In this document: positions 2,405 to 47,298 of the stretch, piece after piece
How positions within the stretch are numbered: position 1 is the first letter of the stretch
Layout: each line of letters opens with the position of its first letter
Assembly (NCBI GenBank): GCA_965649765.1
Contig: OZ287752.1
Location: 55,552,001 to 55,616,000 of the forward strand
Origin: Bispira polyomma
Lineage: Eukaryota
Direction: 5' to 3'
DNA length: 64,000 nt
Notes under the pieces: generated by a model
The model's database searches: none
Seen by the model: the letters and a program-made list of their open reading frames with translations, nothing else
Told to the model about the DNA's origin: nothing
Program-made: the position numbers and the translations under genes

Positions 2405-3614
2405 ATATAGAATTGTCTTTGCTTTACAGCCGCGTTCCAGATTTTACAAACTATTTCTATCCCACTCAATGTAATAACGGTTCACTTTATAAAAACTTCT
2501 AAAGTCACATCTTCAGATAAAATGTATATTTTTCCTGTCTTGCACAATGTGTTTCGTATCGAGTATTTAAGGAAATAATGACAACTTTGTTGGCAAAGTG
2601 GTTGTTGCCAAATTTGCTTTGCTGCCGAGGTGACCCAAGATATATACTCATATTTGTAATTGTGCGGATTTCTATGTTTCTGTCTAACATTGAAAGCTAA
2701 TATATAGGCATATTAGCAAATCGCATAATTACTGATAAAGTTATATCTCACCAACTGATCGATATTATAGCCAAACACAGAAAGTGATTGATATTATGGT
2801 TGAGGTAGTGACTAATACATATATATTATCTAAAAGGATTGCATATCAGTATTTTCTGATGTGTCCTAGTTAGATTACAACTTCAACCATTTTACTGTTT
2901 AATTTCTTTCTAAACCACACCCAAATAAATGTAATATAATGCAATCTATTACATTATTGAAAGTTATACTGTATTACTCTTAAATGTTAAGATATTTATT
3001 AGTTTTGTATTACTTCTAATACATTACCCCAACCCCGATCTACAATCTTACCATTCAGGGTGATTTTGACCGCATCTTCTTTGGTTTTGATCTTTTTCTT
3101 GCCAAAGTCGCAGCGGATATTGATATCAGATGATGAAAATTGAAACTGTGTTTCGCAGTTCTTCTTTGAGAAATGTATATGGCTGTCACAAATTATTTCT
3201 GTATGGAAGCCAAAGGAATTATTATTAATCACAAAGTCTGCCCTTATTGGTTTTCTGAGTACTGTCTAACATTTAGGCTGATTAAATGTCCTACTGCAAG
3301 TAACATATTACATATCATGCCTTCGAATAAAGTCTGGTTTATATATATCAGTCTGGTTTATATATTTTTATACATTTATTTATATATAATAACTTGGTGT
3401 TTGCTGAAAGGTATGTAGAATTTGAAACTTTGATTTTTATGATGTCATGGTCTAGCTAGTTTAGATGCTTGTTTACAAAGAGATAGACATATGACCCCAC
3501 ATCATTAAAGTCAGTCTTACTAGCAGGGTGTTTGGGCTCAATTTGCTATGGGTTCATACTAGTAGTACAGTATGTGAGGTGCAGTTTGATGGTGCAATTT
3601 GTTTTTGAATGTAC

Positions 3615-3794
3615 CTTCACACAGTGGCTCCGTCCCAGACCAGTTACCAGATGCTAAGCATTCCCTTGTATCAGCACCACTGAGGACAAATCCCTCATCA
3701 CACACGTAAGTGGCGTTGGATCCAATTGGGTTGGAAATTGCAACAGAGATATGTCCATTAGCTGGGGGAGGTAAAGGCCCACATCCCAGCATCA
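3615..3794 (-). CDS. Sushi/CCP domain exon, copy 2
   Basis: 180-bp phase 1-1 exon with AG/GT ends. CGPLPPPANG...GSNATYVCDEGFVLSGADTRECLASGNWSGTEPLCE fits the sushi consensus (4 Cys, Trp). Confidence 0.9.
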
Positions 3795-4114
3795 CTAAAT
3801 GTACAAAGATATTACCTATATTACCAATAGGTAAGCCTGTAAATGTCTATAAGTATATATATACATTTATATATATCATAATTTCTACACAGACTGGTGT
3901 TTGCTGAAAGGTATGTAGAATTTGAAATTTTGATTTTTATGATGTCATGGTCTAGCTAGTTTAGATGTTTGTTTACAAAGAGGTAGACATATGACCCGAC
4001 ATCATTAAAGTCAGGCTTACTAGCAGGGTGTTTGAGCTTAATTTGCTATGGATTCATACTAATAGTACAGTATGTGAGGTGCAGTTTGATGGTGCAATTT
4101 GTTTTTGAATGTAC

Positions 4115-4294
4115 CTTCACACAGTGGCTCCATCCCAGACCAGTTACCAGATGCTAAGCATTCCCTTGTATCAGCACCACTGAGGACAAATCCCTCATCA
4201 CACACGTAAGTGGCGTTGGATCCAATTGGGTTGGAAATTGCAACAGAGATATGTCCATTAGCTGGGGGAGGTAAAGGCCCACATCCCAGCATCA
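4115..4294 (-). CDS. Sushi/CCP domain exon, copy 1
   Basis: Identical to 3615-3794 except one base (T->M); same splice sites; offset exactly 500 bp. Confidence 0.9.
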
Positions 4295-5322
4295 CTAAAT
4301 GAACAACAATATTATCTATATTACCAATATGTGAGCCTGTAAACGTCTATCAATAATATCAAAAATTACTATTTTAACATGTTTTTGTTAGAGTAAAAGC
4401 AACTTGCAATCAGGGTCATTATATATTGTGATTGTGTTTTGTGTAAGAATAGGTCAACTGACTATGGATGGATTTTCAATGAAACCAAGCCATTACTATT
4501 AATGTAGTGTTATTAATATTCTGTTATCAACATGTGATTTGTCCTGGGACAACCCATTTGCTAATGGCCTGGTCTCATTTACATATACCCATGTAGTTAT
4601 CAACGCTTGTCTCACCTTCTGACACAAACACGTCATGAAGTCTTCACATACATGGAACGAATGAAGGTTTATTGTCAGCAATTTGTCACTGTCATGACAT
4701 GGAATGAAGATTCACTAATTATCACTTTTACAGACAAATGCCCATAAACATATATCTATATAGACAACGTGTTTATCTATGGTCTCTCACTAATCTTGAT
4801 GTTTCAGACGTATGAAAATGAACACATACCTTCTGACACATACCGCATCATTTTTAAGACAAATTTTCCATTTTAACAAAAATGGGAAACCATCACTCCC
4901 CCTTAAACCTGCCGTGGATAGCAGAGCCATGAGCCAATGCTTTTAACATGTACAACATTTGTCAAAAATCTACAAATTCTCACATACACAGACATTTCTG
5001 AAATATTTAATTGTGACACAATCAGCAGCAATCCATGTAAATGAGACATAGATATAAAATTATTCTCTTTTTTGTCAATTTTTTATTTTATTCACAAACA
5101 TAACCCAATGCAATACTGGATTTCACACATGCATACAAAGTGTTGTAAACGACATTTTTCAATGTAATACACTATATTGTTCTCCTAACAGTGTATAATG
5201 TCATCCGTGTGGTCTTTTCTAAGTATACTGGGAGCATATATGTGCTTTATGGACACAAAATATTCTAAGATATTAGCACAGGACAACGTTAATCACTCTA
5301 ACTTGATTAAAACAATACTAAC

Positions 5323-7907: not shown

Positions 7908-8139
7908 ACAAATAAACAATCTTAATAAAGAAATATAAATATGTGTTGCAGACTGTCACAGATGATGTTTTAGCATATGGGTAAAATACAACAGAAAAGA
8001 AAAGTAATTAAACGTTTACAGGAAATATTGAGCCTAGAAAAGCCTATTTTATTTTTAGGCCAACATGTGTCAAAAATGAAATTTGAGGAATAAACAGCGC
8101 ATATTCAAGATCGAAAAAGTGGTGCCATTCTTCAGTGTT

Positions 8140-9115
8140 TACTAGATTTTCTGTCTCATATTCCTTAATGATGGCCTTGCATACTTCTGGTATAAACTTG
8201 GTCATCGATGATTTCCCCACCCTGAACTGGTAGGACAGGGACCTGTAGCTCTCCCCAGTGGCCAGGTACCTCAAAGTTACAGCCAGTTTAAGTCCAACAT
8301 CCAAGTGCTTTTTACACCAAGTTCTTGTTCTTTTAACATGGGGTGTTATCCTATCCTTGATTTCTTCAACTATATCAGGTGGTGGCCTGAAAAAATTCCT
8401 GTATGAGGCTGCATCCCCTTCCTGTAGCTCCGGCACTAAGTTTGTGTAGTAGGCTAGGGCCTCTCTCTGACTGATCCAAGGCATGGAAGTCTAATCTTCT
8501 CTGGGGGAGCCCAAGGGGCACGTGGTGGTGTTGGGTTCAAATCTTCCTGAGCCTGAGCCTGGGCCTTGCCTTTCTCATATTGTAATATAAGCATAAGGAT
8601 ACATATTTCAATCTCAAAAAAACTACAAATTTCCCTAGTCTCCTCAAAAAATCTTCATCACTTCTTCCTAGCATTGTACTCAATTACTCAATTATTAATG
8701 ACCTGATTACTCAAAAACTCCTGAGTTTTAGGGCTTAAAAGGGGGTACTTATAGGGTCTAAAAGCACTCCCGACTTCATTTTTCAGAAAGTTCGATCCTA
8801 TTGGTCGGGATGACCAATACGTCAGATCCTATAGTCAATACGTTCGATCCTAAGCCATTACATCAGATCCTATCACCAATAAGTTCGATCCTATCAAGGT
8901 CGGGGGGTCAATGAAGTTTAAAATCGTATGGCCTTTACATACGATCGGGATCTCGGGCCCGTCAAAATGGGGCGCAATCAGTTCGATCGGCAAGGTCGGG
9001 GCACATTTTTCTTTTCCCACCCAAAAAGTGGATTTTTCACATTTTTTGGTCCCGACTACCCTGACTTTAAAGTCTGGGACTTTTTGCCGATCGAACTTGA
9101 ATGTGGAATCCCCCT
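8140..9115 (-). mobile_element. PIF/Harbinger transposon 5' remnant with truncated transposase
   Basis: ORF 8044-8484 (YRNFFR...KLAVTLRYLATGESYRSLSYQFRVGKSS...IPEVCKAI) is the HARBI1-like transposase N-terminus; the DDE core is missing. The terminus at 9115 is followed by TTA. Confidence 0.85.
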
Positions 9116-17486: not shown

Positions 17487-18189
17487 TGTATCTTAATTAA
17501 CACTTTTGCAAATCTGCTGCCCAAATACACTTTCTTATATTGTTTAACTAAGTCAAGTTAAATTTCATATTTCTTTTCCAAAACAATAAAGCAAAAAAAA
17601 ATGAATTATTCACCGAAAAATATATTAATGGTACAAACGTGCAACTGAGAACAAGTGTATTTCACTACATAGTTTGACTCCCACTTTTTGCATGGGCATC
17701 AAATATGTTTTAAATGATGTTTGGAAATACTTCTGTTAATACCTCTGTTAAAAGTTTGCATATTTAAAAGTATGATATAATTTCTTTTTTTCGTATGTAA
17801 ATTATATGACAATTAAAAACGCCAGTGTCCGTAAGGATTTGACAATTTTGATCCTAGTTTTTGTCCTATGATTTAAACTTAAACTATATTGACTTTAATA
17901 ATAAAAACATATGAAGCTAAATGTAACACATAGGACACATCACAACATCAAGTAGCACATATCGCATCTAAAATTCTATAAATTAAGCTAACCAAATGAT
18001 AACAGGCAATTTATAATATTGAATAATTGCAAAAACTTAGAATTACAAATAACACCTTTAAAATGTTACCCTTTTTCTGACTGAGAGAATAGAAAAATTA
18101 CTATTATAACTTTGGCTCTTAGTGTATACTTGAACACAGATTTTTTTCCTTGTTGTTTTTGATATTGTGCATGTTGTGGTCACAGGAAT

Positions 18190-21100
18190 ATGCTAATAAT
18201 GAAACTTAAAGTAATAGTGCCCCTTTTGATACTGTATACTAAGGGTGCATTTACAGGTTAGTAGGTTTTGTTTATCATGATAGTACATATGAGTGGGAAC
18301 ATTCATGGTGGTTTGTTGTCAAAATGTCTTACACACATTAAAATTATTTAAAAATAAAGCATTGTAACCTGGCATATAGTATTGTTACAACATCCAAATT
18401 AGTACTGTTACATGTAAATTAGTAAACGTTTATCTAATGTAAAATATATAAAATATGTATAAAAAATCTACTTAAACTTAAAACTCACCAGACTTGCGTT
18501 TTCATTGGCGTATGTGTACTTAACTTATGTGTTTGTTAAAAAACTCACTAGATGCGTACATTATGTGATGAAACCATATAAAGAGTCTTATGTTCTATTG
18601 TCACACAATAGAAACATATTGATGTAACTACTGTGTATGATAAAAAAGCTCCCCCTTGCATATACACACACGACTACGCAAATATCGGGTGTTAATTATT
18701 AAAGCGACCAAAGCTGATGAATGTAACACATGTACTTGGTATATACCTAATGTATTAGTTAATTATATTACTCTGTGTCTGCTATATATGTCTGCCAGGT
18801 AATACACAATGTAGACATGGAGAGCTGTTACAGACAATTTGTTTCATTCCAGATAATACTATTACCTTTAGCAATGACTACATTGAGGTTGGTGAAAATT
18901 TTACTGTAACATGTGAAGTTGAATCTATACCTGTATTTACTACAATAAAACGTGCAAATAACATCTGCTATGGTGGATGTGGGGCAATTATAGCTTGTAA
19001 TGATGAAAGAGATGTTTCTGGAGACTGCAGTGGAAGTTCAATATGGGTAACTTTTAGTGCTGCTGTTATTGAAGATTTCACTGAATGGTCCTGTTACGAT
19101 GGAGACGATTTGTTAGTGTCAAAGAATCTAAAGCAGTTTGGTATGTTATATTTTATTGCAGTAATACCTTTGTCAGGTTAATATTATTAAATTGTATTAA
19201 TCCTTGTTTATAAATGAGAACAACATTACCAGGTATTCCTGGTGTAAATATAATTTCTGTTGTTATTGAATGACTTGCTCTCTGAACCATTTATTATTAG
19301 CTATGTTTTAGTATTCAGCAATAAATAGGTTATATAAATATTACAATTGTGACAATTAATTCCATTGTTAACCCTATGCATAAGGTTCCTTGTCAGATCA
19401 AAGTTAAATGGCAATCACCACTGTAATTGTTTGTCAGGTGACATATATCTGAATCTGTTGTGTGATTTTGTTGTATGGGCATTGGGAAAATAAAATGAGA
19501 TATTTGCCATCTAATGAATTAATGTCTAATCTTAGTAGATAATTCGATTTTCACTATAATACATATACAAACAAAGACATAGTAACAAGTAAGTAGTGTA
19601 TAAATTATCTTCGTATAGTAATTTATAGCATAAATACACACATATCCCTTGGTAATACATGAAATGTGTTAGTCTTGGTATATTTTATTCGACAAAGTAT
19701 TGTTTGATTGCACAGACAGCTCAATCTGATAATTACTTCTACATATATGAACCTACATAATAATCAAATTATCTATTTTAGTTGAAACTACATTAGAATA
19801 CCAACAACAACAAGAGGAAATTGTAAAAAATGAAACATATTCTTATGTGTGTAAAGCGGAGAATGGAAAACCTGAGCCTGTAATTAAATGGTATTTGAGT
19901 GGTATTCATCAAACTGACAATGTACTTGACTACAATACAACAGATGGGGAAGAAATAACCCATTTCAGCAATTTTAACTTGACATCACACACTAGCTTAC
20001 AAGGTCAGGTCCTGTACTGTGAGGCTGAACAACTGCCATATAAAGACAAAGTCAAAGCAAGAGAATTGGAACTCAATGTGTTGTGTAAGTATTTATGTTC
20101 TATGCAGGGTTTTTTTTAAAATGTAAAACTATCTGCCTTTATATGTGGTAGTATCTATTGCAAAATTATAGTAAACTGTAAGTGTATAGTGCTTTCTTGG
20201 CTTAGTGATAAACCTGTGCCATATAAATCATTTAGTAGTAGGAGGGATATGTTTTACCCCCGTTTATTTGATTATTTATTGTTTGTTTTTGTGTTGGTAG
20301 GTTACACGATAGGTTACTGAACCAAGTTGACCAAACCAATTTTGACCAAACGTGAGGGGGGGCTAAGGTATAAGTCATGAAATAACCTATTTAAAATTGG
20401 TGGCACACAGACCCCTGCCATGGCAGCACATGGACAAAAAATGAAAAAAAATTGTTGTACACTGTAGCGCCTTATGGATATATATGTACCCTACTAAGTG
20501 GCCTTCCAGTTACTGATCTATTAAGTTCAAGAAAACAATTGAATATAGAATCTTCACATAAATGTTTCTATTTTCAGTCAGTCCCGTAAAGGCAACTGGA
20601 CAACCTATTGCAGCAGGAGTTGTTAATCAGTCTGCAATATTTGAATGTACAGTTGAAGATGAAGACAAAGGAAATCCAGACTTATATAATTTCACGTGGA
20701 CAAGGAAAAATGATGAGACATTCGATAAAACTACCGCAGATGGCCAATTGAATTTCACACCAACATTTGTGAATGATGATGACACTTACTATTGTGAGCC
20801 CAGAAATAAAGTTGGAATTGGTCTGCCGGGAAGCATTACATTTACTGTTAATAGTATGTATAAAAACTTTGATACATATTATATTATATTCCATTATATA
20901 ACACTACAATCTAAAAACATTGTATAGTCAGACATGCAAATTATGTTGCCGGTGAATTAGTAATGAAACAAACAAGTAATATTATAGGTTTCACCTGGCT
21001 CAATATATATATTTACCTTTACAAAATAAAGTTTTGTCAACTGGTTTAACTGTCATCTAGGTCCTCCAATACGACGATCACCTGTCGATGGAAATTATCG

Positions 21101-24100
21101 CATATTTTACACAGATGACCTTGACATCAATTGTACTGTGGAAGGAAGACCAGATTTAAAACATATCCAATGGAACATTACACCGGATGTGGCAAATATT
21201 TTTTTGTCAAAAGAGGGCAACAAATGGTTTGAGGGCAAGCTTTATTTATCTAGTACAATTTTAAACTGGAATCCTGCGGGCCAAGAAAACAGACACCTGG
21301 GAAATGGGAAGGTGGTAATTTGCTATGCAGATAATGAAATTGGCATTCCTGTTAGCCATCCAGTGACAATGAATATTGAATGTAAGTGTTTCTATAGATG
21401 GACCAATTATACATTGTAAAATATTTATTGACAGTTTGTAATATGAATCTAAGCAACTAAGTAACTAATCCAAGCAACAATTTATTCTTCTTGTGTGATA
21501 GTTGAGACAAAAAATAATAATAATTATAGTTTCTTTCATTGTCATAGTGCACAGTCAATAATGTATTTTGAAAAAACTGAGAAAAGTATTTACAAACCAA
21601 ACAGTAAAAATATATAAACATTTATTTATGTATAAATATAGTTAATTTACATATCAATTTGAATTTAATATTCATCTCCACATAGATAAATATAATTACT
21701 ACTGTATATAATATGACATTCATTTCTCCCATCGGTCCCATCAGTACATATCTTAGAAATTTGGTCACTGTTGGTCTCCAAGAGTTTAAATTTACCAATG
21801 TTGTATGTTGTGTGAAAATACATGCATATTTTTGCCAGCAATAGATCTGCTTTACAAATAGGTATTACATAACTTGTACTAGAAATGCAACTACCAAATA
21901 ATTAAAAAATTTCTTATATGAATAAATTAAGGTATATTATGTGTATGTGGGGTAATCTTTGTATTAACCTGGCAGACTTTGTTGTTTAAGTTTTTTTGGA
22001 AAATATTTTAATGTTATTGCAAGTTTTCCAAACTTAATCATGGGTTTTTAGTTGAACCTGGGAAAGCTCAACTTGAACTGAGTATGGACAAAATCAATGT
22101 GGAAAATCAGTTAAATTTGACATGCAACCTTGACAAACCTGGTAACCCAGGTGCCCATGCTTACTATTTTGCCAATGACAAAGACTGGGAGAACAATATT
22201 ACTGCCAATGTAGAAATCATACAGATCACAGATATCAACCAAGAAGGGGTGTACAGATGTGCTGGAATAAATGAGCCATATAATAAAGGTGTCATGTGTG
22301 GGAAAACATCTGATGGACAATTCCTTACTGTTACAGGTATTATTAAAAAAAGTTCCAATTGTATTCTCCATTAAATAACTGCAGCATTCATATCTATTAC
22401 AGTGTCTCACATGTGTTATTTAACCTGGTATTTCAATAATTGACTTGTGGTTAACATATATTAGCATTTTAAATTTATGTTACCAAACAATGATAAATAC
22501 ATATATTTTTGCTGTAAAATATAGTGCCACCCAAAATCTTTGATCCAATGGAAGCCAAACTAGTGAACCCCATATATGGAGAGGATTTTTACTTGGTTTG
22601 TGTAGCTGCGGCAAAACCAAAGGTACAGATCAGTTGGTATAAGGGTGATGCAACTATTTTATCCGATGATGGATACTTTGACAAACCAGTCGAATTCACA
22701 ATAGATATCACAGATTATTTCCATGGTCTTACAGAAGGTAAACAGAGTACTATGATGTGGACTCCACCCAATACGGCTGTAACCTGTGAAAGTGTGACAA
22801 TATACGATGGTGTTTACACCTGCAAAGCTAAAACAGAGGAAGACAGTCATAATACTGTGCAATCAAAGACAATAACCTTACAAACTAGGTGTAAGTACTC
22901 ATGATGTTACATTAAGCTAATTAAGTAAGATAATCATAGATGGTATGTAACATAATGGTATATACATTCAAATACATGTAAAAGAAAAACTCTGACAAAA
23001 TTATATTTTACACAGATCCACCTATTTGGACAGGGAATACCAACTTTGTAGCTGAAATGAATTCATCTTTTACTTTCACATGTTCCATTTGTGCATCACC
23101 ACCTGTCAACAGTTATGTGTGGTACAAGGAAGGGGTTCTTAAAGAAGGGGTACCAATTTGATGAATGTTTTAGTGGCATTCACATATTTTAAAAAGTCAC
23201 AAATGTATTTGACCAATCATTGTGAAATATTAATGAAAATATATAGAGTATTTAGCGAAAGGTATAAAACGAACAAGAATAGCTTTAAAAAAAGTCAGGT
23301 CAAAGGGAGTTCTATTATAGACTAACACTTATGTGGGTATATTCCTGTTCGGAGTCATTCCGGAATTCATTAGAGACCATTTCGCGTAGCAATTTTACCT
23401 ACTTTTTAATTAGGTCAGACTTGAGAATCCCAAAAATAAAAAAGGGTTGTTGGCGTTTTCGAAATTGTATTCCATTATTTCTTTCATATTTAACATTAAC
23501 GGTGATAAAAGAAGATATATGTTGTCATGAATATTATCAATAAATCTACACCCCTAAATGGTTCATCCTAGTTTGCTTGTTAAAAATATATCTTCATACA
23601 GGAAACAGAAAAGGAACTTCATATTCAGATTACAAGCAAGACAGATTTTGGAATGTATGAATGTGAACCTACAAATGCTGTGGACTCTAAAAGATTCCCA
23701 ATCAATCTAACAAGATCAGGTATTTAAACGCCTAAGTCCAAAGTATTCATCATAGTGGCACTCACATAATTATCAGTATTATAACACTATGTTATTAATA
23801 TATGACGCTTTAATGGTGTAGCAGATACTTACTACCTCTTCACCTCTGTAGATAATGTTGCCAAGGTTGTTCTACAAAATACAAATGTCAAAGCATCTGA
23901 CACGAACACTTACAATATCCCCAATAGTGTAGTGTTAAATATATTTCTCATACGTGAATAGTTGCCATAGATGATATTTTATGTTTGTAAATAATTGTTC
24001 AAACTCAGTGCTACAGTTTATCTGATATAAGAGTTATGCACATCTGTGAAATTACACTGAAACAAGCCATATGATTGTTTGACACTACATAGTTAAGAAT

Positions 24101-26745
24101 GCTCTTTTGTAAACCATTAAGCTCTACATTTATGTACAATCATTTTAGTTTTTTTTTTGCTTGTCTCAGGTCCTCCAGTCATCAAAAAGTTAAAGATTAA
24201 TTTGAACATCACTTCCACAGCAATACCTATTTCATGGGTCATAGAAACCTTTGGGGACTCTCCATCACTAACTTTTACCATTTGGACCAAGCACATCTCT
24301 TCTAGCAGTTATGAAATATGGAAAGATGATATTTGCATGAATGTTAAAGAGGGTGACTTGGTACAAATTAATGTAGATGGCTTAGCACCAGACAGACAAT
24401 ATGACATCAAAATTGCAGCAAAAAGTGTTGAACCAAGTGGTGATGTCATGAGTCAGCCTTTGTACACTACTGGAGAAACAAGAGGTTGCTTATACTTTAA
24501 TAAAATATGTACCCATAGAAACAATCATGTAATCATCATTCATTTGCCACCAGTTTTTCTAATAGTTTATGAAGTGCTACATTGTTGCAATTTACAATGT
24601 TTATCACCAAATGGGATTGTGATATATTATCTGGTTAATCATTTGTCATGCTGTTTCCAGATGAAAATATGTAATATGTTGTACCATGGATAATAGAAGC
24701 CCAATCAATCTAGTTTTTCCCTGTCACTTTTTTGTTCTGTTTTTATTAGAATCACCAGTTATTGACATAGATACAGTTCTTGTTTCCACATATGACCTGA
24801 TAGTGACCTGGACATTTCTACAGAAAGTACATAATAACCAGGTTAGTTAATTATTTGGCAAAATCGAACATGCATGTAGAGTTATTAAAGCAAATTTTAC
24901 ATGAACAGTTTTATATTGGTTATATTTAAGTTGTGTGTGTATTTGGTTGCCATGTCAAAAGAATAACATAAAAACACTTAACACAGTTTGAGCCCTTTAT
25001 GACATTATGCATCAAGTACTGGGCGAGAGATAATGGGGAACAAAGCTCTATCATCTACCCCAGCATTGAAGCCTGTGTGATAGAAGTGTTTATAGGAACA
25101 GAGGTGATCCACGGCATATTTGACCCTACATCGACTTACTATATTGAATTAATGGTGTATGAAAATGGACTCCCAGGATCTAACTCTGGGAACAATTTTG
25201 AAGCTTCTAATGCAGAGGATGCTGATGACACTAGTTAGTGCATTTTTTATATTTCTGTGAGAGAGATAAAGTCATATAGATATGAAATGGGAATGTAATT
25301 TGATTTTACCTTCCTTGATGCTGCTTAATTTGACTAAATAAGGAAATATGGTTATGCGATGTAATTTTGTTGAGTTTTATATGAATGGTTAATTCATAAC
25401 TTTATGTTTTGTTGTAGTATCACCTGGTGGAATAGCAGCTATTGCTGTATCAATAGTTTTGGTTTTATTTATTGCACTGGAGTCTTTGATGCTAGTTTCC
25501 GGAATGCTTAATATCAACAGAAACTTTTGGAATCGTAAGAAAAATGTGTTTTTTTTTATCTTATCTAATATCGGATTTCTTCTTTAGTTCAAAGGAATAA
25601 TAACAGACAAGTAATTGAAAATTACACAAACATCTCCAACTAAATTAGGATATATTTTAGACATGATTAAAATTCTTAGGCCATATTTAAAAATACGTCT
25701 CAGTCTGAAGCTAGTCTTCAGCTTAAGATTTGTTTCTTTGATTTGGGCCTTTGAAAATGGCCTCTGGATTAATTGACTTAGCCACAAGCCTTTATATTGT
25801 ATACAACTAAAGAAAACTTTTACATTTTGCCTAGACATTACTAAACATTATTTTAAACATCTTAACACCAACAAGTGTACACATATCAAATTTAGTACAT
25901 TTCTTCATTGGCTAGTAAGCAATCATGTATCTATACAATTAAATTGTATTCTACAGGAAAGAGCCAGAATGCACCAACAGATAAAAGGTGAGAATATTTT
26001 TTATGCCGAAATTCAGTTTTCTAGTTTCTTAATATAATCCCAAATAACTGTTGTACTACATTTGTATTGTAGGGAGGATGAAACAATCTCTTGGGATAAA
26101 GGTAAATATTTGTGTTGATACAGAAACAGTAAAATGAGTTTACATTGTTGTTTGGCCTCGGTGAAATGTATTTAACATCATAACTTAAAGCTGAGGTAAA
26201 TATAAAAATCTTTAGAAACAAGAACAATATAAACTCCATGATCTTGTTAGGAGTAATCTATTTTTACTAAATACTTTTAGGCTATGAGTTGTGTCATTGG
26301 TATACTGTTCTCAAATGAAGGCCATTCCCAGCATATAATGTATATAATCATGACAGTGTGGTTTAAATCATCGTCTTCACCAAATCTACTGCTAATGTTC
26401 CCACATACATGTCAGAGCCGTGATTCGAAACCCATCACTACAGAGGTAGGAGGTATGAGTGTTATGGAGGTACCATATCCCCAGTGTTAGGCGAAATAAA
26501 TTTCATCTTATTTTCAGTTTTGTGTATTTTAATCAGTCTTAAAAGACAAAATAAAATAAATGAGTTGTTATTTCTGTGACTGTAATTAGTTTTGTTGATC
26601 AGGTTACAGTGAAATCCAAATGGCACAGAGTCAGAGTGAAGACCAGACATATGAAAAGCTCCGCCAGCAACACTATGAGAATACAGGATTTGAACAGTAT
26701 GAATCACTGGATAAGTTGGCTGGTGACTCAACAGACAAAGTGTGA
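18190..26745 (+). CDS. Type I membrane receptor: signal peptide + 7 Ig + 2 FN3 + TM + tyrosine-motif (ITAM-like) tail, ~1043 aa
   Basis: Manually spliced GT-AG exons in compatible phases with no stops: 18190-18256, 18853-19140, 19782-20084, 20578-20853, 21061-21381, 22052-22336, 22525-22890, 23016-23149, 23602-23719, 24170-24484, 24750-24841, 24987-25233, 25418-25534, 25957-25987, 26073-26101, 26603-26745 (3132 nt). Ig motifs include CKAENGKPEPVIKW, DDDTYYCEPRNKVG, EGVYRC, DGVYTC and DFGMYECEPTNAV. FN3: ITSTAIPISW...GLAPDRQYDIKIAA. TM: GGIAAIAVSIVLVLFIALESLMLV. Confidence 0.85.
20235..20512 (+). mobile_element. HINE/Helentron-like non-autonomous repeat in an intron
   Basis: GGAGGGATATGTTTTACCCCCGTTT, then a (TTTG/TTTA)n tract, and a 3' end ...CTACTAAGTGGCCTTCCAGTT, the typical HINE layout. 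Confidence 0.5.
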
Positions 26746-30339: not shown

Positions 30340-33300
30340 ATTTTGGAATAGAATTTTGAGAATGCCTGATGACGGGTTTAATACAAAAATATTTTGCCGG
30401 GTAGAGCGGGTCACCGCACCAGCTAGTTCAGTGCTTTCTAGTACTTTTGCCAACTAAACTGCATCTATTTTAATTGGCCAACATGTGGGAGTACTAATTA
30501 ATTGTGGCCCAATTACCCCTTTACCTTCAGTTTTGAAAGTCAAACCAAGGAGGCAGGACACTGTTTTATAAATAACATAAAATATTTAAAAAATTTATTT
30601 TAATTTTTCCTTATTTACAACTTTTATATCTGACAATTGTATTGAATATAGAACAGTATCACTCTATGTACTTGGAACCATACTACTAGTATAACTAGAG
30701 ATAAAAGGAATAATTACACTAGTGCCATTTACAACATTCTATGTATGTGAAGCCGCACTACTTGTGTGAGGACGAACTGCTGTGTTATATATATATATAT
30801 AAAAGGATCAATAATAGTGTAGTGCCATATATGACCTTCTATGTAGGTGGAATAAGAATAAAAACTGGCTACGATTGTGTTTTATATACAAAAAGGAGCA
30901 TTTGTTTACGTGGAGATATAATACAAAAAAAAAAACTATCTCCGTGTTATGGAAACCCATTAAAAATGTTGTAAATTTAATGGACCTGTGAACTGAAGTA
31001 TTCCAAAGCTCCTCTGGATGTGTTCCTGGATGTTATATTTAACTCAAAACCTTTGAGTCATGCGAATATAGCTCATTGAGCATTATTTACAGGGCCGTAT
31101 TTTACTACCTATTGATATTTTAATTGTTTTTAACTCAACTATATATTCAAATCATTCCAAAACGCTCAACTTATATACGCATGTATCAAAGCACAGGATC
31201 TTCTTTTATTTTATTCTAGATTGACTGAAAATTATAAAACTGTAAAAATGCCAAAGGTAAGAACATATAACTGCAAATCATGTGGAGGTAATCACCAACG
31301 GCCGGTTGGTAATAGATGTCAAATGTTACAAGATGATGAACAATCAGGACTAAATGTACACTCACCGTCTATTAGTGGGAGTACTATGTCAGCCTCCGAG
31401 GTGAATCTACTGATTCTAGAAGAACTTAGGAGGTTGTATGACCACCATTGAACAACAAGCTATTAATGAGGTGCCCGATGTCACAACCCCTCGACGACCC
31501 GCCCAGGACAAACCTTGGACAGAGGACCGAGTATCTGATGCAATCTTGCCATCCCTACAATCTCTGCGGGCCTCACATTCAATCCAAGGGGAAGTCAACA
31601 ATCGTCTGAGGGAGCTTCAAGAACTGAACGAATCTGGTAGGTTCAAATCTCAACGGGGGGCTCAGACACCATATGGGTAAAGAAAGAAGTGGCCTGGCCA
31701 CATAATTATGTTTTGGGGTGCAGTGCTAAAGCTCGTGTTTCATATGACAATCTATCCATGTGTCAGTGGGTGTCTGGCTTTAGTGCTATTATTAAAGAGG
31801 AGTCAAACATTGAGACAGAAAACTGCCATGTTAGAATATATGTCAGATAACATGGATGATAGCCATGATTTTTCGTAGGCAGCAGGCATACTGTACTTCT
31901 GTGCAGGATGGAAGAGAACAAAATTGATTGGAAAAACACAGCCAAAATTGATAGGTTAAGAAGAGTAAATGCTCAAAAAACGTATACAAATGTAGACAGT
32001 AAGAGTAGTAATAGTTTTACTGCCTCCAAGAAAAGCCGGAAGGAAGGGGGCAATCCTTGCCTTTTGTATCAAAAAGGTACTTGCACACACAAAGGCGACC
32101 ATGAGTCGGGGGGCCAGATGTATCTTCACATCTGTGCTACTTGCTCTGCCTCTGCAAAGAGTTGTACTCGTCCATCCAAGAACTGTCGCAAAAATGCTGC
32201 AAAGAACTAGTAGGGCACTGCCAAAAGGCAGTGCAAAGTTCAGTAAATTATAAAAATAAACTGTTCAGAGATGTTGTTTGTAGAGAATATAAAAGTGTAA
32301 ATAACAATATTAAATGTCATAGTGAAAGTGCTAATTGGAGAGCTGACTTGGCCAAATTTCAAAATAAATCTTATGCAGACGTGGTCAAATCTGTAAGACA
32401 AACAAAGAAACAGCCCCAGGGATGGGATAATAAACACAACAGCTCCAACCAGCGCTCTCACAATAAAAGTAAAAAGAAATAATGCGTATCAGTCTAATGT
32501 GAACAAAACTGCTGTAAAATTGTCATCTGTCAAACATAAACAATTGTTTTCAGCAGAAAAAGAACAGCAATCAGCTGTCTTAGGTGAAGGTCACAGACCG
32601 TGAAATTATTGTCAGCTGGATGAAAATAAAACTTCTGTATATGTGTCATCTGTCAAACATAAATATTTGTTTTCAGCAGAAAAGGGACAGCAATCAGCTG
32701 TTTCAGGTGAAGGGGGTAAACCTTGGTATGATTGCAAGAGACAGACTCCCCCCATTCACAAAAACAGAAAAACCACAGTTTGTCACTCCTCCTCCAAACT
32801 AACAAAGAACCCTATTAAGAAAACAAAGGGGAATGGGATGTATCCAGTTAGTTTAGAAACAATAGACAAGAATGTTCACAAACCCCATATATTCCCTACA
32901 ACTAACAATAGGTTCAGTGTGTTAACCCCATCAGAGTGTCAAGATATCCCAGATGACATTAACAACGTGGTGGGGGGTAAGGGTATCAGTGTTGAAAAAA
33001 ATTACACTTCAGAAAAAGCCTCACAGCAACTACGAAAACCCTTTAGGGGTCACCGGGTAGTAAAAAACTTAGGCTATATTGATAGGTGTATTGTACCACT
33101 AACAAGAAAGTGAATAAACAGAATTTACTATCTGGGGGTACTAGAAACAGGGTAATCAGAAACCCCTCAGAGCAGGAAAACTCGGATATTAGCAACAAAG
33201 CTGCAGTTACAAATGCATCGGATGATAAGTATAACTTACAATTACAAGTCAAGCCCCGTACACAAGAAATACTGCAAGCAGCCGTCAGAAACCACACATT

Positions 33301-36300
33301 CAACAAGTGGTCTGCACAAGTGAGTGATAAATTCGGGTTTATTCCAATAGGGGACTTACAATTACCCTATAGTGATAAAAGAAATAAAACTGACAAATCT
33401 TTAATCGAATTGAATAAAATTATACGTGAATCAGCTTCCCTCAATTTCATGGGGAGGCAGTTGGAAATCACTTCTCAATTAAACTCAGATAAATGGGATG
33501 AATATTTAAAGGACTATTGGGACGTTCAATCCCACTTCTTATTAGATATGGATTTCCGTTTCAGATTTTTACAGAGATGCTACATTGTCTTATGTGCAAA
33601 AGAATCATAACTCGGCGTCGGCTTACTCGCGTGAGATTGAGGCATATTTAGAGGTAGAACAAGGTTAAGGGGAGATATTAGGTCCTTTCAGTACACCACC
33701 ATTTCGTGATACACACATATCACCCTTCATGAGTAGAGAAAAGCCTGGGGCCCCTCATAGGCGGGTCATCATAGATCTCAGCTTCTCCCCCGGGCAGTCA
33801 GTAAACTCAGCTCTAAAAAAAGACAAATACCTAGACACCCCTTTTATTTTGACACTACTGACAGTAGATAACATTACTGAAAAAGTTAAGCAATTAGGAA
33901 AAGTTTCAATGCTCTATAAAATTGATTTAAGCAGGGCATTTAGGCACGTGAAGCTTGACCCTTCCGACTATGACTTACTGGGCTTAAAAATTGACCAGTA
34001 CTACATAGACACTTGCCTTCCATTTGGTTTTAGGCACGGAAGGGCCATATTTCAACGCCTGAGCGACGCAGTCAGATTTGTCATGAATAACAAGCAATAT
34101 GATGTCATAAACTACATTGATGACATCATAGGTTTTGGCCTTCCTAGCAAAATTCAGGACTCTTTTAAAACACAACATGACCTCCTCCTGGAACTAGGTT
34201 TCAAAATTAGTAGACATAAACTAGTGGCACCAGCCACTAAGGTTACATGTTTAGGGGTTATAATTGACGCTGAGAAGTTTACAATGTCAATACCAGAAGA
34301 GAAATTAAATTCAATACGTAAAACATGTGGTAATTGGCTAGGGAAAAAATCATGTAAGAAAAGAGACCTACAATCCCTCCTAGGTAGTCTACTGTATATA
34401 TCCAAGTGTGTTAGAGTGGCCAGGGCATTTCTCAACAGAATGCTAGATACATTAAGATTATGCCATGACAAAAATAACATCACATTAAGCTCTTCTTTTA
34501 AATAAGACCTATCATGGTTCATAAAATTCCTACCTCATTTTAATGGTACCACATTCTTCGATCATAGACCCCCATCAGCTAAAATAGGACTTGATGCATG
34601 TCTCCAGGGTATAGGAGGAGCCTGGGGCTCCCAGGTCTATAAATTAGAAATACCACTCGGCTTTGAAGAGTCTGGAAGCACCAGTGGCAAGGCCAAAAAA
34701 TTATCATATATTGCGACAACCAGGCGGTAGTGTCCATCCTTGCTGCAGGTAAAACAAAAGATTTAACACTAGCAGCCATTGCTCGAAATATTTTTATGGA
34801 GGTTGCACTTGCAGGTATCAACCCTAGAACCATACATATTTTTGGAAAAAACAATGAAGTGGCAGATTTATTGTCGAGGTGGCACTGAACACCCCATAAT
34901 ACCGAAAAACTACTAACACACATTAAACACGCCCAGTGGGTAATCCCACCCAGTTTTTGTAATGTTGATTGGTCTATGTAATTCTCAGGCTCCAACCCAT
35001 GGGTAAGGGAGGTAGCAGGTAGAGCTGCAAGGAGAGCACAACAAGCCTTCAGATCATCTATCCAGAAGGCTTATCAATTCATGTTTAAAAACTTCCTCTC
35101 ATATGGTGTATTCATATCTGTATCAACCAGCAACATTTCACCACTGGTCCTCTTAGCATTTCTAGAGGTGCTAATCTTTAATAAGGTCTCCACATCATCA
35201 ATAGCAAATTATCTAGCTGCTATTAAAGCCAAAATGTCACTCTACGGCTTAGACATCTCAAGCTTTTCTGATCCCAGAACTAAGTACTATCAAAAAGCAA
35301 TGCTATTACAGAAACCCTTTAGAGCCACAATAAAAACTATTATAGATATCCCAACATTGCGAGCCATTGGCTCACAATGTGACAAAATGTACATGGGACA
35401 GGTTTTCAAAGCCCTATACCCAGTGGCCTATTTTTCATTTCTGAGAATTTCGAACTTTGTCCCACATTTCATAAAACAATATTCTCCAATACAACACCTG
35501 TCTAGGGGAGACATCTTGTTTGCCCCCCCTGGCATTCACGTAATCATAAAATGGTCAAAAACCATGCAGACCAGAGATACCTGTAAGGTTATTAAACTTC
35601 TTTCCTTAGGTTCCTCCCCCTTATGCCCATATAGGGCCCTCAAGAATCTGCTTGCAATAACTACTGGTTCCAAAAATAAACCCCTATTTTAATTTAAAAA
35701 CTTTCAGCAATGGAACCCTCTCACGGATTCAAAAGTCAGAAGAAATTTGTCACATTCAACCAAAATGTGTCAATCCAAAACATACAAAGTCGTGGCACAT
35801 GGTCCTCCGACTGTGTATGGAAATATATAATACAAGATCACAATGCTTCGGACCAAGTAGCATTGGCCTTCAGATCCTTACTACATCATTAACACTACTA
35901 CTAGCTGGGCTTTGGTGCTTTTTCTTGCTATATTCATATAACTTTTACATGCTTACCATATTGCGTGAACTTAATGTCACATATATACCAAATTTAATTC
36001 AAAAATCTTAAGGTCACCTTTAATTTATACATACGTAAACTTGTTAATGTCTCTTTTATTACAGTAACTTAAACTCATATTCCAAACTCACAGTTAAGGT
36101 TACCTTAAAGTTTAACCTTAACTTTAGGTTAAGGCAATCTTAAACTCATGCCTCAACTTAAGGTGACCTTAAATATTTTAATTCTAGTAATGTAAATAGT
36201 AGATCTAACCCTTAGAAAGTATTAAAATTAATATTCCCAAATGAATGTGTTTTTACTAACTTCATACACATGTCACTATCAGAGGCACTGATGTACGGTT

Positions 36301-41080: not shown

Positions 41081-41223
41081 NNNNNNNNNNNNNNNNNNNN
41101 NNNNNNNNNNNNNNNNNNNNNNNNNNNNNNNNNNNNNNNNNNNNNNNNNNNNNNNNNNNNNNNNNNNNNNNNNNNNNNNNNNNNNNNNNNNNNNNNNNNN
41201 NNNNNNNNNNNNNNNNNNNNNNN
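41081..41223. other. Assembly gap (143 N)
   Basis: Run of N inside the LRR locus. Confidence 1.
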
Positions 41224-41738
41224 NTGTTGGTTTGAATGACACTAGCCTAAATACAAGTGTCATAAGTAACCAAGTGATTGAACTAACTGCTTTCGTCCTG
41301 GCGTACAATCAGCTGACCAAGGTAAGATATGTCTATCATTGTCTTTAACAAAAATCCAGACTTAAGTGTAACAAATTGAATTTGGTCATAAGGTATGCAA
41401 TAATTGTATCTTTCAGTCTATTCTACACAGAACAACACCCAAGATTTGTACCACTTTGTACAGATTTAAACATTAACTGCTATTTGATATAACCATGAAA
41501 AATATTTCCACCATACAATAAACAATTAAATAAATTTGACACCCAAACTTTGTCCCAAAAAGCAATATAGTGAAATTGGGTTGTGTTGTGGTTAATGATA
41601 TGCGACAATAATGATACCATTGACTAACATGGTTTCTAATGATCACACGTTGTGTTGCACAAACAGTAACCTGCTGCAAACTTTTATAGTTTTTGATTGA
41701 ATATACAGTAATAATTATGTTAGACATAAAATAGGTTA

Positions 41739-44700
41739 AATGGTGGTTCCACTATGCCGATTTGGTCCCCGGCCTTCCCGATTTTCAGGTTCAGGGCGTG
41801 TCCGTATAGGTCCAAGGGTGAAAACTCGGCAAACATGGTAGTCGCGAAGATTATTAAAAATGTTCAATATTTTAAAAAAGTCCCCCATCTCTAAAAATAG
41901 GAAGGTCGGTATCGCCAAATAAGTTCGATCAGGTTGTCATTACGTTCTGTTTGATAGCTCTTATCTCACTCCAGGCCTGTTCTAACAGTGGCTTGTTCAA
42001 ACGTATAGGTCGGGGGCCGAAAACGGGGTGAACGGGTGGTATGAGGAGGCTGAGGCAGTTTTAGTACAGACTTCAAGGCCTAATCTAATCTAATCATACT
42101 TTTATAGCACTTAACCTTAACTTAACCAACAAATTTGAAGCTGCAGCTAAGCTAAGCATTAATCAAAAAAAAAATCAGAAATGGGGGATGGATGGTGGTC
42201 ATAACCAGAAAGACTACCGGGATGGTTGTGATGGCTAGGCCTGTTCGAAAAGGTAGGCTTTCAGCCTATTCCTAAAAGAGAAGAACGTTTGAGCCAAGCG
42301 AACATGATCAGGCAGGCTGTTCCTTATGAACGGGCCATCATGAGCAAGGCAATGATTAAAATGTACTTTGGATTTGTGGATGCGAGCGTCGAAAGTGAGA
42401 ATATTTAGATACAATTTATCAGAGTTACTGCACCTAGTCCTGACTGAGCATGTATATTTGGATAGATGGGGGCTGAAATAGATGGGGGATCCAGAATTTA
42501 GAAATTTGTATATAATTGTTGCAGTTTTGAAAGCAACACAATTTTTTATTGGGAGCCAGTGGAATGACTTGAGTACAGGAGTAATATGAGAAAATTTAGA
42601 AGTTTTTGCCACAATGCAAGCCAAAGAGTGTTGAACGTTCTAAAGGCGTTTGAGGTCACTACAACATAGCGATGGAAGAGAGAGTTGCAGTAATCAAGCC
42701 TACTGCTGACCAAGGCATTGGCAATAGTGATTGCATGTGGATTTGGTTAGATAATGTTGAATTCGCCTGAAATCACGGAGGCCAACAAAACATGATCCGC
42801 GCATGGATGCAACATAGTTGGAGAAGGAGAATCCGAGTCGAACAACACGCCAAGGTTGCGTACTTTGTCAGCTAGGAAAAGCCTGCTGTCAAGAATACTA
42901 ACTGGGAAACAGCTGGACAGTTTTTCCCGTTGCGACTTTGAGCCAAACAAAATAATCTCAGTCTTATCAGGGTTCAGCTTGAGTTTATTTGCTGCCATCC
43001 AGTGTTGTACATCGACAAGGCAGTTCTATAAGGAGGTGAAAGCTGCCTGGGCAGAATCGGGTGTGAGGTGGATGTACAATTGGATATCATCCGCATTGAA
43101 GTGAAAGTTTATATTTTTGTATGCAGCCATGAACTGGCTGCGTGGAGTGGTGTACATTGAGAACAAAATAGGACCCAGGACTGAACCCTAGGAAACTTTT
43201 TAACCATGTAGGGTCGGACGAGATGTTGCCAATTTTGACCGATTGAAATTTCTCAGACAAATATGCCGTGAAACATTTAAGTGCAGTACCGCTGATACCA
43301 AACCAAGATGATAGGCACTAAAGAAGAACTTTGTGATCAATAGTATCAAATGCCGCCGACAGATCCAGCAGTACTAAGGCAGTAGGCATACCTTTGGATA
43401 AAGATATATGAACGTCATTTTTGATGCAGAGTAGTGCAGTCTCTGTAGAATGACCCCTTCTGTACGTTGACTTATACTTATTGTAAAGATTACTAACATC
43501 GAGATGTTGTTTGATCTGTAAGACGACCGCACGTTCAACCAACTTAGAGATATAGCAAAGGCCTGAGACAGGATGATAGTTTTTCGAATCAGCCTTTGGA
43601 AGAGAAGATTTTTTTATTAAAAGAGTGACAATGGTTTTTTAAAAATCATTTTGAAAGACGCCATTGACCAATGAGAGGTTAACAAGTTTGGTGATTGAGG
43701 GCAATAAAATGTCAATACATTCCTTAACAAGGAATGTAGGCCACGGATCTAACAAGCTAGATGTTACGGGTGCTGTAAGTATAATCTTTCTGACCTCATC
43801 AACAGATATTGTGAAGAAATAGTTGAAGATGGTTGGTGGAGCTGATGGTAAAGGAGCATTTGGGCAGATAATATAAATCTATCACGGATCCTAGTAATTT
43901 TATCAGTAAAAAATGTTTGCCAGTGATTTACTATTGCTGTTTTCGTGTAGTATAGTCTGTTTTTTTCTGGTGTAGGGTGCTGTTTAATTTCTCCCAGAGT
44001 TTCTTGGAGTCGCCCTCACTTACTGTGATCAGTTGGTGTAGTATACACGTTTGGCATCATTGATAGTGTTATTGCACCTGGTGATGCATTTGTGTAGTCG
44101 TGATCTGTTTATGGTAGTATTGTTTCGGCGCCATGTCAGTTCAGCTTGTCTACGCAGCATCTTCAACTCCCGGTACATACCAGTGATCAACTAAAGTGCA
44201 GGCTTCTTCAATGTCTTGGACTTACATGGAGCATGGCATTCTAAGAGAGATTGTAGATCAGCACAGTACTGCGTGTATAGATCCATTGCATTATCAGCAG
44301 GAGACTTGACGAAGGCCATATCAGCCAAGTTTCGTCTAAGGTATGACATATTGATTTTATGAAATTGACGAAAGTGATTTGTGTGACAGCAAAAGATTGC
44401 GGGTAGGGAGCATCAAGTTCGCAGGATATTGAGAAATGATCGCTGATGTGATCAATGTTTTTTTATATTTCTGATACCATTGAAATCAGTAGGAGTAAGC
44501 AGGCAGTCTAGTGTATGCCCATGAATATGGGTAGGGAAGTTTATGTGTTGGATAAGGTTGCAAGATTCCAGAACAGTAGAGAAGCGATTACTATTACTAG
44601 ATGCAGTGTCTATGTGGATATTAAAATCACCACAGAATATAGTATGAGAGGGTAACGAGCAAGTGAACCAGAAAAAAGGTCGATCATGGTCGGTGTTCCG

Positions 44701-44855
44701 TCAGAACGGGAGACAATCAGTTCAATTGGGAAGGTCGCCCCACATTTTCATTTTTCCATCCAAAATATTAAATTCATTGATTTTTTTACTCCAACCGCCT
44801 CGATCTCAAAAACTGGCCCATTTTGCCAATCGAACTTGAATATGGAACCACCACT
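41739..44855. mobile_element. Harbinger MITE interrupted by an L2 LINE
   Basis: TIRs AATGGTGGTTCCA / TGGAACCACCACT; TTA target duplication at 41736-41738 and 44856-44858; the two halves are colinear with the copy at 49965-51263. Confidence 0.85.
42079..44675 (-). mobile_element. L2 LINE (partial APE + RT), frameshifted, (GATTA)n tail
   Basis: ORFs 42235-42624, 42747-42998 and 43318-43542 (LVLLDLSAAFDTIDH, NKLKLNPDKTE, HITPVLKSFHWLPI). CGDFNIH and HGHTLD endonuclease motifs lie near 44500-44640. The tail TAATCTAATC is at 42081. Confidence 0.9.
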
Positions 44856-45339
44856 TTAAAGACAATAATTATTTTGGTTTTCATAATGTATTATTAAATT
44901 TTGTTTATGACTAAAAATTCATATTTGTGTTTTAGATTCCTGATGTGACCATGCTCAATTTAACCTTGCAGTATCTGTCATTAGCAAATAACCATTTAAC
45001 ACATGTTAACTTGAATTACTTCACTAATTTTCCACAACTAAGTATGCTGAATTTCAACTATAGTAATATTGTTAATGTAACACTCTCTCAACCAATAGCA
45101 GTGTCTGAATTACAGTTCACAATCAATAAACTGACCGAGAAAGATATGAATTTACTTCCTCAGATATGATTAAATTGGATTTGAGTTCAAATCCACTGAT
45201 CAATGTTATTGCTGCAAATACAGCAATCACTGTACAGGCTCTGTACATAAATGACATACAGTCACATGTCACATCAGACATAACAATCAATATCACCCAT
45301 TTAGAAATGTATAGCTCATCTGCAAGTGATTTTACTTCA

Positions 45340-47298
45340 CCCGGTGCAACAACACTATAAATGACTCAAAACGTGCCTACTATGCCAACATGATATCACA
45401 AAGCGAGGGTGACCGGAAGAAACTTTGGCAAAAACTAAATAGCACCCTCCACCGTAAAAAACAGACTATACTACCCGAAAATTCCAATAGCAAATCACTG
45501 GCAAACATTTTTAGTACTTTTTTCACTGATAAAATTATCAGAATCCGTGACGGTTTTACATTAGCTGCTCCAAATGCCCCTTTACCAACAGCTCCACCAA
45601 CCGTCTTTAACTGTTTCTCCACAGTAACTGTTGATGAAGTCAGGAAAATTATACTGGCATCACCCGTAATATCTTGCTTGCTAGATCCGTGGCCCACATT
45701 CCTTGTCAAAGAATGTATTGACAATTTATTGCCCTCAATCACAAAACTTATCAACCTCTCGTTGATAAATGCCGTCTTTCCAGATGATTTTAAAAAGGCT
45801 ATTGTCACTCCTTTAATAAAAAAACCTTCTCTTTCAAAGGCTGACTTGACCTGTCTCAGGCATTTGCTATATCTCTAAGTTGGTAGAACGCGCGGTTGCC
45901 TTACAGATCAAACAACATGTTGACGTCAGCAATCTGTCCAAGTATCAGTCAGCGTACAAAAGTGGTCATTCTACTTAGACTGCACTTCTCTGCATCAAAT
46001 ATGATGTTCATACATCTTTATCCAAAGGTATGCCTACTGCCTTAGTACTGCTGGATCTGTCAGCAGCCTTTGATACTATTGATCACAAAGTTCTTCTTGA
46101 GTGCCTATCGTCTTGGTTCGGTATCAGCGGTATGGCGCTTAAGTGGTTCACGGCATATTTGTCTGATAGATTCCAATCAGTCAAAATTGGCAATATCTTA
46201 TCCGACCCAACATGGTTAAAATTTGGTGTTCCCCAAGGTTCCGTCTTGGGTCCCATTTTGTTTTCCATGTACACCACTCCACTCATACAAAAACATAAAC
46301 TTTCACTTCTATGCTGATGATACCCAACTGTACATCTACCTTACACCTGACTCTGCCCAGGCAGCTTTCACTTCTTTACAAAACTGCTTTGTCGATGTAC
46401 AACACTGGATGGCAGCAAATAAACTGAAGCTGAACCCTGAGAAGACTGAGTTTATTTTGTTTGGCTCCAAGTTGCAACGGGAAAATTTGTCCAGCTGTTT
46501 TCCACTTTACATTCTTGGCAGCAGGTTTTTTCCAGCTGACAAAGTACGAAACCTGGGTGTGGTGTTCGACTCGTAGATCATGTTTTGTTGGCCTCCGTGA
46601 TTTCAGGCGGATTCGACGCTATCTTTCCAAATCCACTGCAATCACTGTTGCCAATGCTTTGGTCAGCAGCAGGCTTGATTACTGCAACTCTCTGTTCCGT
46701 TCCTTATCTCATAGTGATCTCAGACGCCTTCAGAATATCCAACACTCATTGGCACGTATTGTGACCAAAACTTCTAAATTTTCCCACATTACTCCTGTAC
46801 TCAAGTCACTGCACTGGCTCCCAATAAAATATCGTGTTGCTTTCAAAACAGCAACAATAATATATAAATTTCTAAATTCTGGATTACCCACTTATTTTAG
46901 CCCCCATCTATCCAAATATACATGCTCAGTCAGGACAAGGCGCAGTAACCCTGATAAATTATACCTTAACATTTCCACTTTCGACCCTCGCATCCACAAA
47001 TCCAAAGTTCAGTTCAATCACTGCCTAGCTCATGATGGCCCCCTCATTTGGAACAGCCTACCTGATCATGTTCGTCTGGCTCAAACTTTCTCCTCTTTCA
47101 GGAGTAAGCTGAAGGCCTATCTTTTTGAACAGGCATTTTCACCTTAGCCGTCGCAACCCTTTACGGTAGTCTCCCTGGTTATGACTTTCATCCGCCCACT
47201 ATTTTTGATTTTCGATTAACGTTTTGAGTTTGTTGCGCCTTAGAATTTGTTGTACAAAGATTAAGCGCTATAAAAGTACGATTAGATTAGATTAGATT
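45340..47298 (+). mobile_element. 5'-truncated L2 LINE of the same family, inserted in an LRR exon
   Basis: ORFs 45390-47147 (LDLSAAFDTIDH, GVPQGSVLGP, YADD, SRLDYCNSL, HWLP) and an (ATTAG)n tail at 47281-47298. Removing it rejoins the LRR frame as SDFTS|FEMRNF. Confidence 0.92.

Follow-up and report, generated by a model that had tools for sequence, protein, structure and literature searches.

Does the worm Bispira polyomma possess an intact activating receptor among its clustered immunoglobulin (Ig)-type genes and, if so, what kind of molecule is it? The question arises from a gene at positions 18190-26745 (plus strand), here called the receptor gene, in a 64,000-nt stretch of contig C5 (C5:55,552,001-55,616,000; the window) of a genome of 1.035 Gb in 75 contigs. 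A sequence-only reading of the window had proposed that 16 GT-AG exons splice in frame to about 1043 amino acids, and had taken the product for a lineage-specific, fast-evolving recognition receptor. On balance, and with a confidence slightly above even, we regard the receptor gene as encoding a lineage-restricted, single-pass recognition receptor of the Ig superfamily (IgSF), of the activating type.

Structure of the receptor gene

In the model predicted from the DNA, 16 exons were located and all 15 introns (85-670 nt each) are bounded by GT-AG. The coding sequence amounts to 3132 nt and gives 1043 amino acids with a single, terminal stop, which bears out the exon structure proposed before. 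The layout is a leader, seven Ig-type domains, two FN3 domains, a transmembrane (TM) helix and a tail with four Tyr; the Ig exons are of phase 1-1, and a phase-0 intron splits Ig7 and likewise the second FN3. The GC content is 0.38 in exons and 0.29 in introns. Database searches were run one exon at a time, and the joined translation was used for the frame check only. The Pfam Ig and FN3 matches, the one TM helix and the leader characterise the product as a type I membrane protein of the IgSF.

Exon 1 (18190-18256) holds the start codon and a probable signal peptide of 22 amino acids, the leader being judged by eye and from the paralogue P3 (66% nucleotide match to its leader); an AG acceptor immediately upstream suggests a further non-coding exon. 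Exon 2 (18853-19140) encodes Ig1, a degenerate V-like domain with six Cys, which keeps the B- and F-strand Cys and is devoid of the canonical C-strand Trp; its four extra Cys are common to the paralogue P5. Neither Ig1 nor the second FN3 gave an Ig or FN3 match in Pfam in the exon-by-exon search, and both were counted from their Cys/Trp pattern and exon phase, from the alignment of paralogues and from a language-model lead. For Ig1, this language-model search, taken as a lead only, placed unnamed, mostly mollusc clusters nearest, followed by V-set domains. An AlphaFold model of Ig1 from the single sequence was unusable (pLDDT, a predicted local accuracy score, of 37), and single-exon word searches with FN3 and Ig1 gave no match, a blank made weak by the length filter.

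Ig2 (exon 3, 19782-20084) is a CD80-like C2-set domain (PF08205, C2-set_2, E=6e-8) with domain 2 of SYG-2 as its top PDB match (E=2.4e-7), and Ig3 (exon 4, 20578-20853) matched PF13927 (E=1.7e-5). The Pfam matches of the divergent Ig4 (exon 5, 21061-21381) and of Ig5 (exon 6, 22052-22336) were faint (E about 0.08-0.1); exons homologous to that of Ig4 are present in P5, in P6 and in the gene L029 of a second species, and exons homologous to that of Ig5 in paralogues. Ig6 (exon 7, 22525-22890) is an I-set domain (PF07679, E=5.5e-6) with an extra Cys found family-wide. The two halves of Ig7 (exon 8, 23016-23149; exon 9, 23602-23719) were assigned by frame and Pfam, the Ig_3/I-set matches of Ig3, Ig6 and Ig7 ranging from E=1e-4 to 5e-6. 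Intron 8 contains, at about 23490-23570, a short repeat of very high copy number with a read depth more than 100 times that of the receptor gene.

The first FN3 (exon 10, 24170-24484; PF00041, E=6e-6) opens a block common to P1, P2, P3 and P5. It is followed by the second FN3-like domain, whose first part (exon 11, 24750-24841) was assigned by frame and paralogues and whose remainder (exon 12, 24987-25233) is family-specific and had no Pfam match. Exon 13 (25418-25534) encodes the TM helix (about residues 941-968, hydropathy 2.8). Two cytoplasmic microexons of 31 nt (exon 14, 25957-25987) and 29 nt (exon 15, 26073-26101) precede exon 16 (26603-26745) with the four-Tyr tail (YSEI, YEKL, YENT, YESL) and the stop. 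Exon 14 has a phase-matched counterpart in P1 and in the second-species gene L023, and exon 15 shares length, phase and the end motif SWDK with both. Because L023 has identical phases for its TM, microexon and last exons (1-1, 1-2, 2-1, 1) and the same SWDK/GY junction, both microexons and the last exon are independently supported.

A conserved four-Tyr tail of FcgRIIA type

The tail of about 75 amino acids carries a YxxL-x12-YxxL pair (26650-26709), the non-classical spacing of FcgRIIA, with a YxN site between the boxes; as in FcgRIIA, D-x2-Y precedes the motif. The non-classical ITAM (immunoreceptor tyrosine-based activation motif) of primate FcgRIIA has spacings of x11 and x12, x11 being found in macaque (PMC6563257), and one second-species gene likewise has an x11 variant. 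The ectodomains are unrelated, FcgRIIA has no counterpart of the additional YxN, and at motif level the likeness is regarded as convergent. A loose ITAM pattern appeared in 0.5% of shuffled receptor tails.

The motif is conserved in the second species, whose genes are known from 20-kb pieces. Three of its genes (L023/L024, L026/L027 and L029) retain the YxN and all four Tyr together with the +3 residues, their tails being 52-65% identical to that of the receptor gene. Compared with the paralogues the tail has a ratio of non-synonymous to synonymous substitution rates (dN/dS) of 0.24-0.29; for this and all dN/dS values given here the intervals are wide and the comparison partners are pseudogenes. 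The ITAM/ITIM label of the sequence-only reading thus survives in part: the tyrosine tail is conserved and relatives with an ITIM (immunoreceptor tyrosine-based inhibitory motif) lie in the cluster, but the receptor's own tail contains no ITIM, no immunoreceptor tyrosine-based switch motif (ITSM) and no x6-9 ITAM, the only spacings being x11 and x12.

A lineage-restricted family with ITIM-bearing relatives

The description of the cluster rests on 264 kb; members located at C5:55.9-56.2 Mb, 53.7-53.9 Mb and 53.24 Mb enter it through their coordinates alone. A genome-wide copy count, as the sequence-only reading had proposed, was made with a family-specific FN3-half profile and gave 20 loci, each of them on C5, of which 15 lie at 55.53-56.16 Mb and 5 at 53.70-53.86 Mb, in agreement with the paralogue cluster supposed there. 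Five copies of the four-Tyr exon were found, namely in the receptor gene, P1, P3, P5 and at 53.24 Mb. The last of these (C5:53241668-53241790) is 76% identical, lies 2.3 Mb off and has no family FN3 match nearby. Stops, frameshifts or deletions are present in P1 (seven Ig, V-set tip), P3 (three Ig) and P5 (seven Ig) and also in P2 and P4, which are remnants. With about 20 loci on one contig and five broken copies, the family has the features of birth-and-death evolution.

Since word search and Pfam had left the domain open, the FN3-half profile was searched against 1.84 billion proteins. Nine matches were obtained: five exon fragments on host contigs of the European Nucleotide Archive (ENA) assembly ERZ22147071, two short contigs of other samples and two repeat artefacts; no annotated animal protein matched in this set. 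The two artefacts, P0004 and P0007, are long matches to multi-stretch repeats and were set aside. From these data the family is judged to be lineage-restricted with birth-and-death turnover, and here the earlier proposal of a lineage-specific family is upheld.

The cluster also contains receptors of the opposite tail type. P6 lies about 180 kb from the receptor gene. Its tip is a V-set domain and its TM is of another kind; there are several tail microexons, and SYYADL in one exon matches the ITIM consensus. In the ectodomain of P6 ten exons have an open frame; no second half of Ig7 was found, and a unique phasing of the microexons was not possible. In the second species, host contigs carry both receptor types, and IVYADL exons are followed by an I-set exon in L022/L025 and L028. 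Since both tail types, four-Tyr and ITIM, are present in both species, they are taken to be older than the split of the two. Their occurrence in one cluster is the arrangement of paired receptors.

In P6, too, an in-phase I-set exon (Pfam E=3e-13) lies downstream of the ITIM exon and is followed by the last exon; it is 44% identical to that of L022. If spliced, it would probably form an intracellular Ig domain on an ITIM receptor tail. A literature search, a weak test, returned no relevant report of intracellular Ig domains on ITIM receptors. I-set exons past TM and ITIM exons were seen at L018:7583-8322 (C5:55.784 Mb), L022:16987-18029, L025:19006-20033 and L028:14220-17030, and also at C5:55932478-55932750.

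Mosaic evolution of ectodomain and signalling block

Over the stretch that begins with the first FN3 and ends at the stop, the receptor gene shares 73-87% nucleotide identity with P1, P2, P3 and P5, neighbouring intron sequence included. Upstream of the first FN3 only the leader and Ig1 align with P3, where they have their closest relatives, and the remaining Ig domains show 30-50% protein identity. Ig6 of P1/P5 is 61-64% identical to that of L026/L027 but 33-35% to that of the receptor gene, whereas the first FN3 of P1/P5 is 73-75% identical to that of the receptor gene and 35-38% to that of L026. Approximately unbiased (AU) tests rejected a single history (clade of receptor gene, P1 and P5 on Ig6, p=0.03; clade of P1, P5 and L026 on FN3, p=2e-10), with groups picked after the identities were known and a long Ig6 branch of the receptor gene. 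Within the second species, L026 and L029 are 61% alike in FN3 and only 33% in Ig6. Since FN3 and Ig6 point to different histories by identity in both species and by the AU tests, we conclude that the FN3-TM-tail block has been homogenised within each lineage among the four-Tyr genes.

P1 (L004:3815-4204, minus strand, to L003:6815; C5:55.529-55.536 Mb) is a broken three-way mosaic: its V-set and Ig2-Ig5 are nearest to the ITIM gene P6, Ig6-Ig7 are of P5 type and the cassette is of four-Tyr type. That P3 lost Ig4-7 by simple deletion was ruled out, as the 3Ig-2FN3 arrangement is also found in L023/L024, where Ig3 joins FN3 directly, as in P3. L026 and L027 (alleles or recent copies) differ at 24 positions in the Ig6 exon (2368-2724; 3194-3550), and their FN3 and tail are free of differences. 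Of these changes 18 are non-synonymous and 6 synonymous; the ectodomain is variable, with non-synonymous polymorphism (pN) not above synonymous (pS). In both genes, a reverse-transcriptase sequence is inserted between the FN3 exons.

Comparison with known receptor systems

Alr proteins of Hydractinia have 1-3 Ig domains and one FN3-like region. The receptor gene differs from them with its seven Ig, two FN3, x11/x12 spacing and lack of an ITIM. It resembles them in belonging to an invertebrate cluster of genes for Ig, FN3-like and TM parts that includes pseudogenes and degenerate Ig domains as well as activating-like or ITIM tails (PMC9546547). The Alr paper defines the ITAM as x6-9, which the receptor tail does not show, and the domain count is that of Echinoid; the Alr layout assigned by the sequence-only reading was therefore not retained.

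Vertebrate paired receptors (KLRC, PIR, CEACAM, Siglec) also lie in clusters that combine activating with inhibitory tails, and they too homogenise part of the gene. There, the part homogenised between opposing receptors is the ligand-binding one (PMC3210942), whereas the worm family homogenises the membrane-proximal block among receptors of the same sign and its Ig domains stay divergent. The likeness to paired receptors supposed earlier holds for the two tail types but not for the ectodomains, the nearest ITIM-type one among the genes read being 29-51% identical by domain (receptor gene against P6; 27-51% for P1 against P6). The oyster CgIgIT2 and Botryllus FcoR are Ig receptors with ITAM, hemITAM or ITIM tails in immune or self recognition (PMC11999971, PMC12065747); with five Ig and no FN3 in CgIgIT2, and V, sushi and two C2 domains in FcoR, their domain sets differ from that of the receptor gene.

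Proposed function and alternatives

An immune function and expression of the receptor gene are inferred. The ectodomain, with its Cys-rich V-like tip, the C2-set domain, five more Ig and two FN3, would bind a cell-surface or microbial ligand. Once receptors cluster, a Src-family kinase would phosphorylate the tyrosines of the tail, and the YxxL-x12-YxxL pair could then, like the FcgRIIA motif, dock a Syk/Shark-type kinase with tandem SH2 domains. Grb2-type adaptors dock on YxN by established SH2 specificity. The middle YxN may thus recruit such an adaptor and trigger an engulfment or effector response, as in Draper/Megf10, which has an engulfment output (PMC8092387), or CgIgIT2. Cluster members with ITIM motifs would give the opposing phosphatase signal. 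The sequence pattern is consistent with recombination or gene conversion having repeatedly set one FN3-TM-tail cassette behind ectodomains that are old and divergent, most products having since decayed.

Several points weigh against an activating recognition receptor. The tail does not contain a classical ITAM (YxxL/I-x6-8(9)-YxxL/I), and no close ITIM twin of the ectodomain, as expected of receptors paired by similar ectodomains, was found among the genes read. Ligand binding and Syk/Shark docking are themselves argued from analogy. Ig1 has a dN/dS of 0.91 (0.49-1.89) against the broken P3, so positive selection is unsupported. Glu959 in the TM (25480-25482) is private to the receptor gene; a role as adaptor-pairing residue was ruled out by its absence from all paralogues and the second species. 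None of the RNA runs covers the locus. Of the six copies with the FN3-TM-tail block in the 264 kb, the receptor gene is the sole intact one. Lastly, layout and best Ig2 match point to the nephrin/Echinoid adhesion group.

This last point leads to the best-surviving alternative, which we consider unlikely, namely a locally expanded adhesion or neural recognition molecule of the nephrin/Echinoid kind whose tyrosines recruit adaptors of the cytoskeletal or growth-factor kind (Nck, Grb2, SHP2) without any immune role. Echinoid, an adhesion gene present in one copy, has a long tail, whereas the receptor gene belongs to a multi-copy, high-turnover family and has a 75-residue four-Tyr tail. The two share the ectodomain of seven Ig and two FN3 (three of these domains weakly supported in the receptor gene) ahead of the TM, and Echinoid of Drosophila is tyrosine-phosphorylated (PMC2409562). 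Val ends most four-Tyr tails, a possible PDZ ligand. The link to nephrin and Echinoid consists of exon-level PDB matches, SYG-2 for Ig2 (E=2e-7) and other proteins for the other domains, all of them weak; no sign of one-to-one orthology to a neural IgSF adhesion molecule was seen in them, in line with the earlier view that this is not a conserved one. Moreover, the receptor tail has no Nck-type YDxV motif, and the many pseudogenes, the swapping of cassettes and the ITIM-type siblings better fit immune-type clusters.

It is improbable that the receptor gene is a silent or dying copy whose frame is still open while, as in its broken neighbours, expression is absent or constraint relaxed. The decay of P1-P5, the Glu that arose in the TM, the absence of the locus from the RNA runs and the FN3 dN/dS of 0.4-1.1 against paralogues would fit such a fate. 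Against it stand 3132 nt free of stops and frameshifts and 30 splice sites, all intact, where every neighbour has several lesions, and the last exon, which retains all four Tyr, some of which were lost in each of P1 and P3. The three runs over the window are DNA contigs of one study; they show no exon variants, but contigs drop variants. There is no read depth at 18180-18379, and 20263-20292 is a repeat. Fast evolution in the sense of positive selection, part of the earlier proposal, could not be sustained, as no domain has a supported dN/dS above 1 except in one 38-codon TM comparison with a pseudogene. Least probable is a role in allorecognition, as determinant or as receptor, like that of Hydractinia Alr or Botryllus FcoR. 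The family does resemble those loci in its clustered IgSF genes, V-like tips of degenerate form, pseudogenes and tails of ITAM-like and ITIM type (PMC9546547, PMC12065747), and in the second-species pair Ig6 has 18 sites with amino-acid changes where FN3 and tail have none. However, the architecture differs, a sequence link to either Alr or FcoR was neither tested for nor seen, and the worm has no known fusion/rejection system.

We tentatively propose, as a possibility short of an even chance, an undescribed immune-receptor complex of annelids, conserved in at least two species, in which an FcgRIIA-like activating cassette of two FN3, TM and four-Tyr tail was copied behind Ig ectodomains that are old and divergent, as a mirror image of the homogenisation in vertebrate paired receptors, and is balanced by ITIM receptors with intracellular Ig domains. 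Ig clusters balanced by ITAM and ITIM are described in cnidarians, tunicates and vertebrates and as single cases in oyster, and our literature searches found none for annelids. For the homogenised signalling cassette and for the ITIM-plus-cytoplasmic-Ig partner no description was found in the literature either, while the general kind of system is already known. Because the receptor gene is an intact activating candidate with a tail conserved across species, the question of Syk/SHP-balanced germline repertoires in worms becomes directly testable.

Other features of the window

Two of the broken paralogues lie in the window on the minus strand. P2 (52030-53454) is a remnant of FN3 exons and TM with stops and a frameshift, in which no Ig or tail exon was found; P3 (60080-64000), a 3Ig-2FN3 paralogue with a tail of four-Tyr type, runs about 5 kb past the window end. 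Two sushi exons (complement control protein, CCP) at 3395-4350 (minus strand), in a 500-bp tandem duplication of 96% identity, belong to another gene. A run of 144 N occupies 41081-41224. Decayed mobile elements were seen at 412-2047, 8047-8490, 31134-35689, 42238-47144 and 55462-56142 (LINE-like, Harbinger-like and DIRS-like by our own reading of the classes, with reverse transcriptase found by Pfam in two). Elsewhere in the genome, and consistent with an annelid, erythrocruorin linker exons were noted at C7:48557639-48568253.

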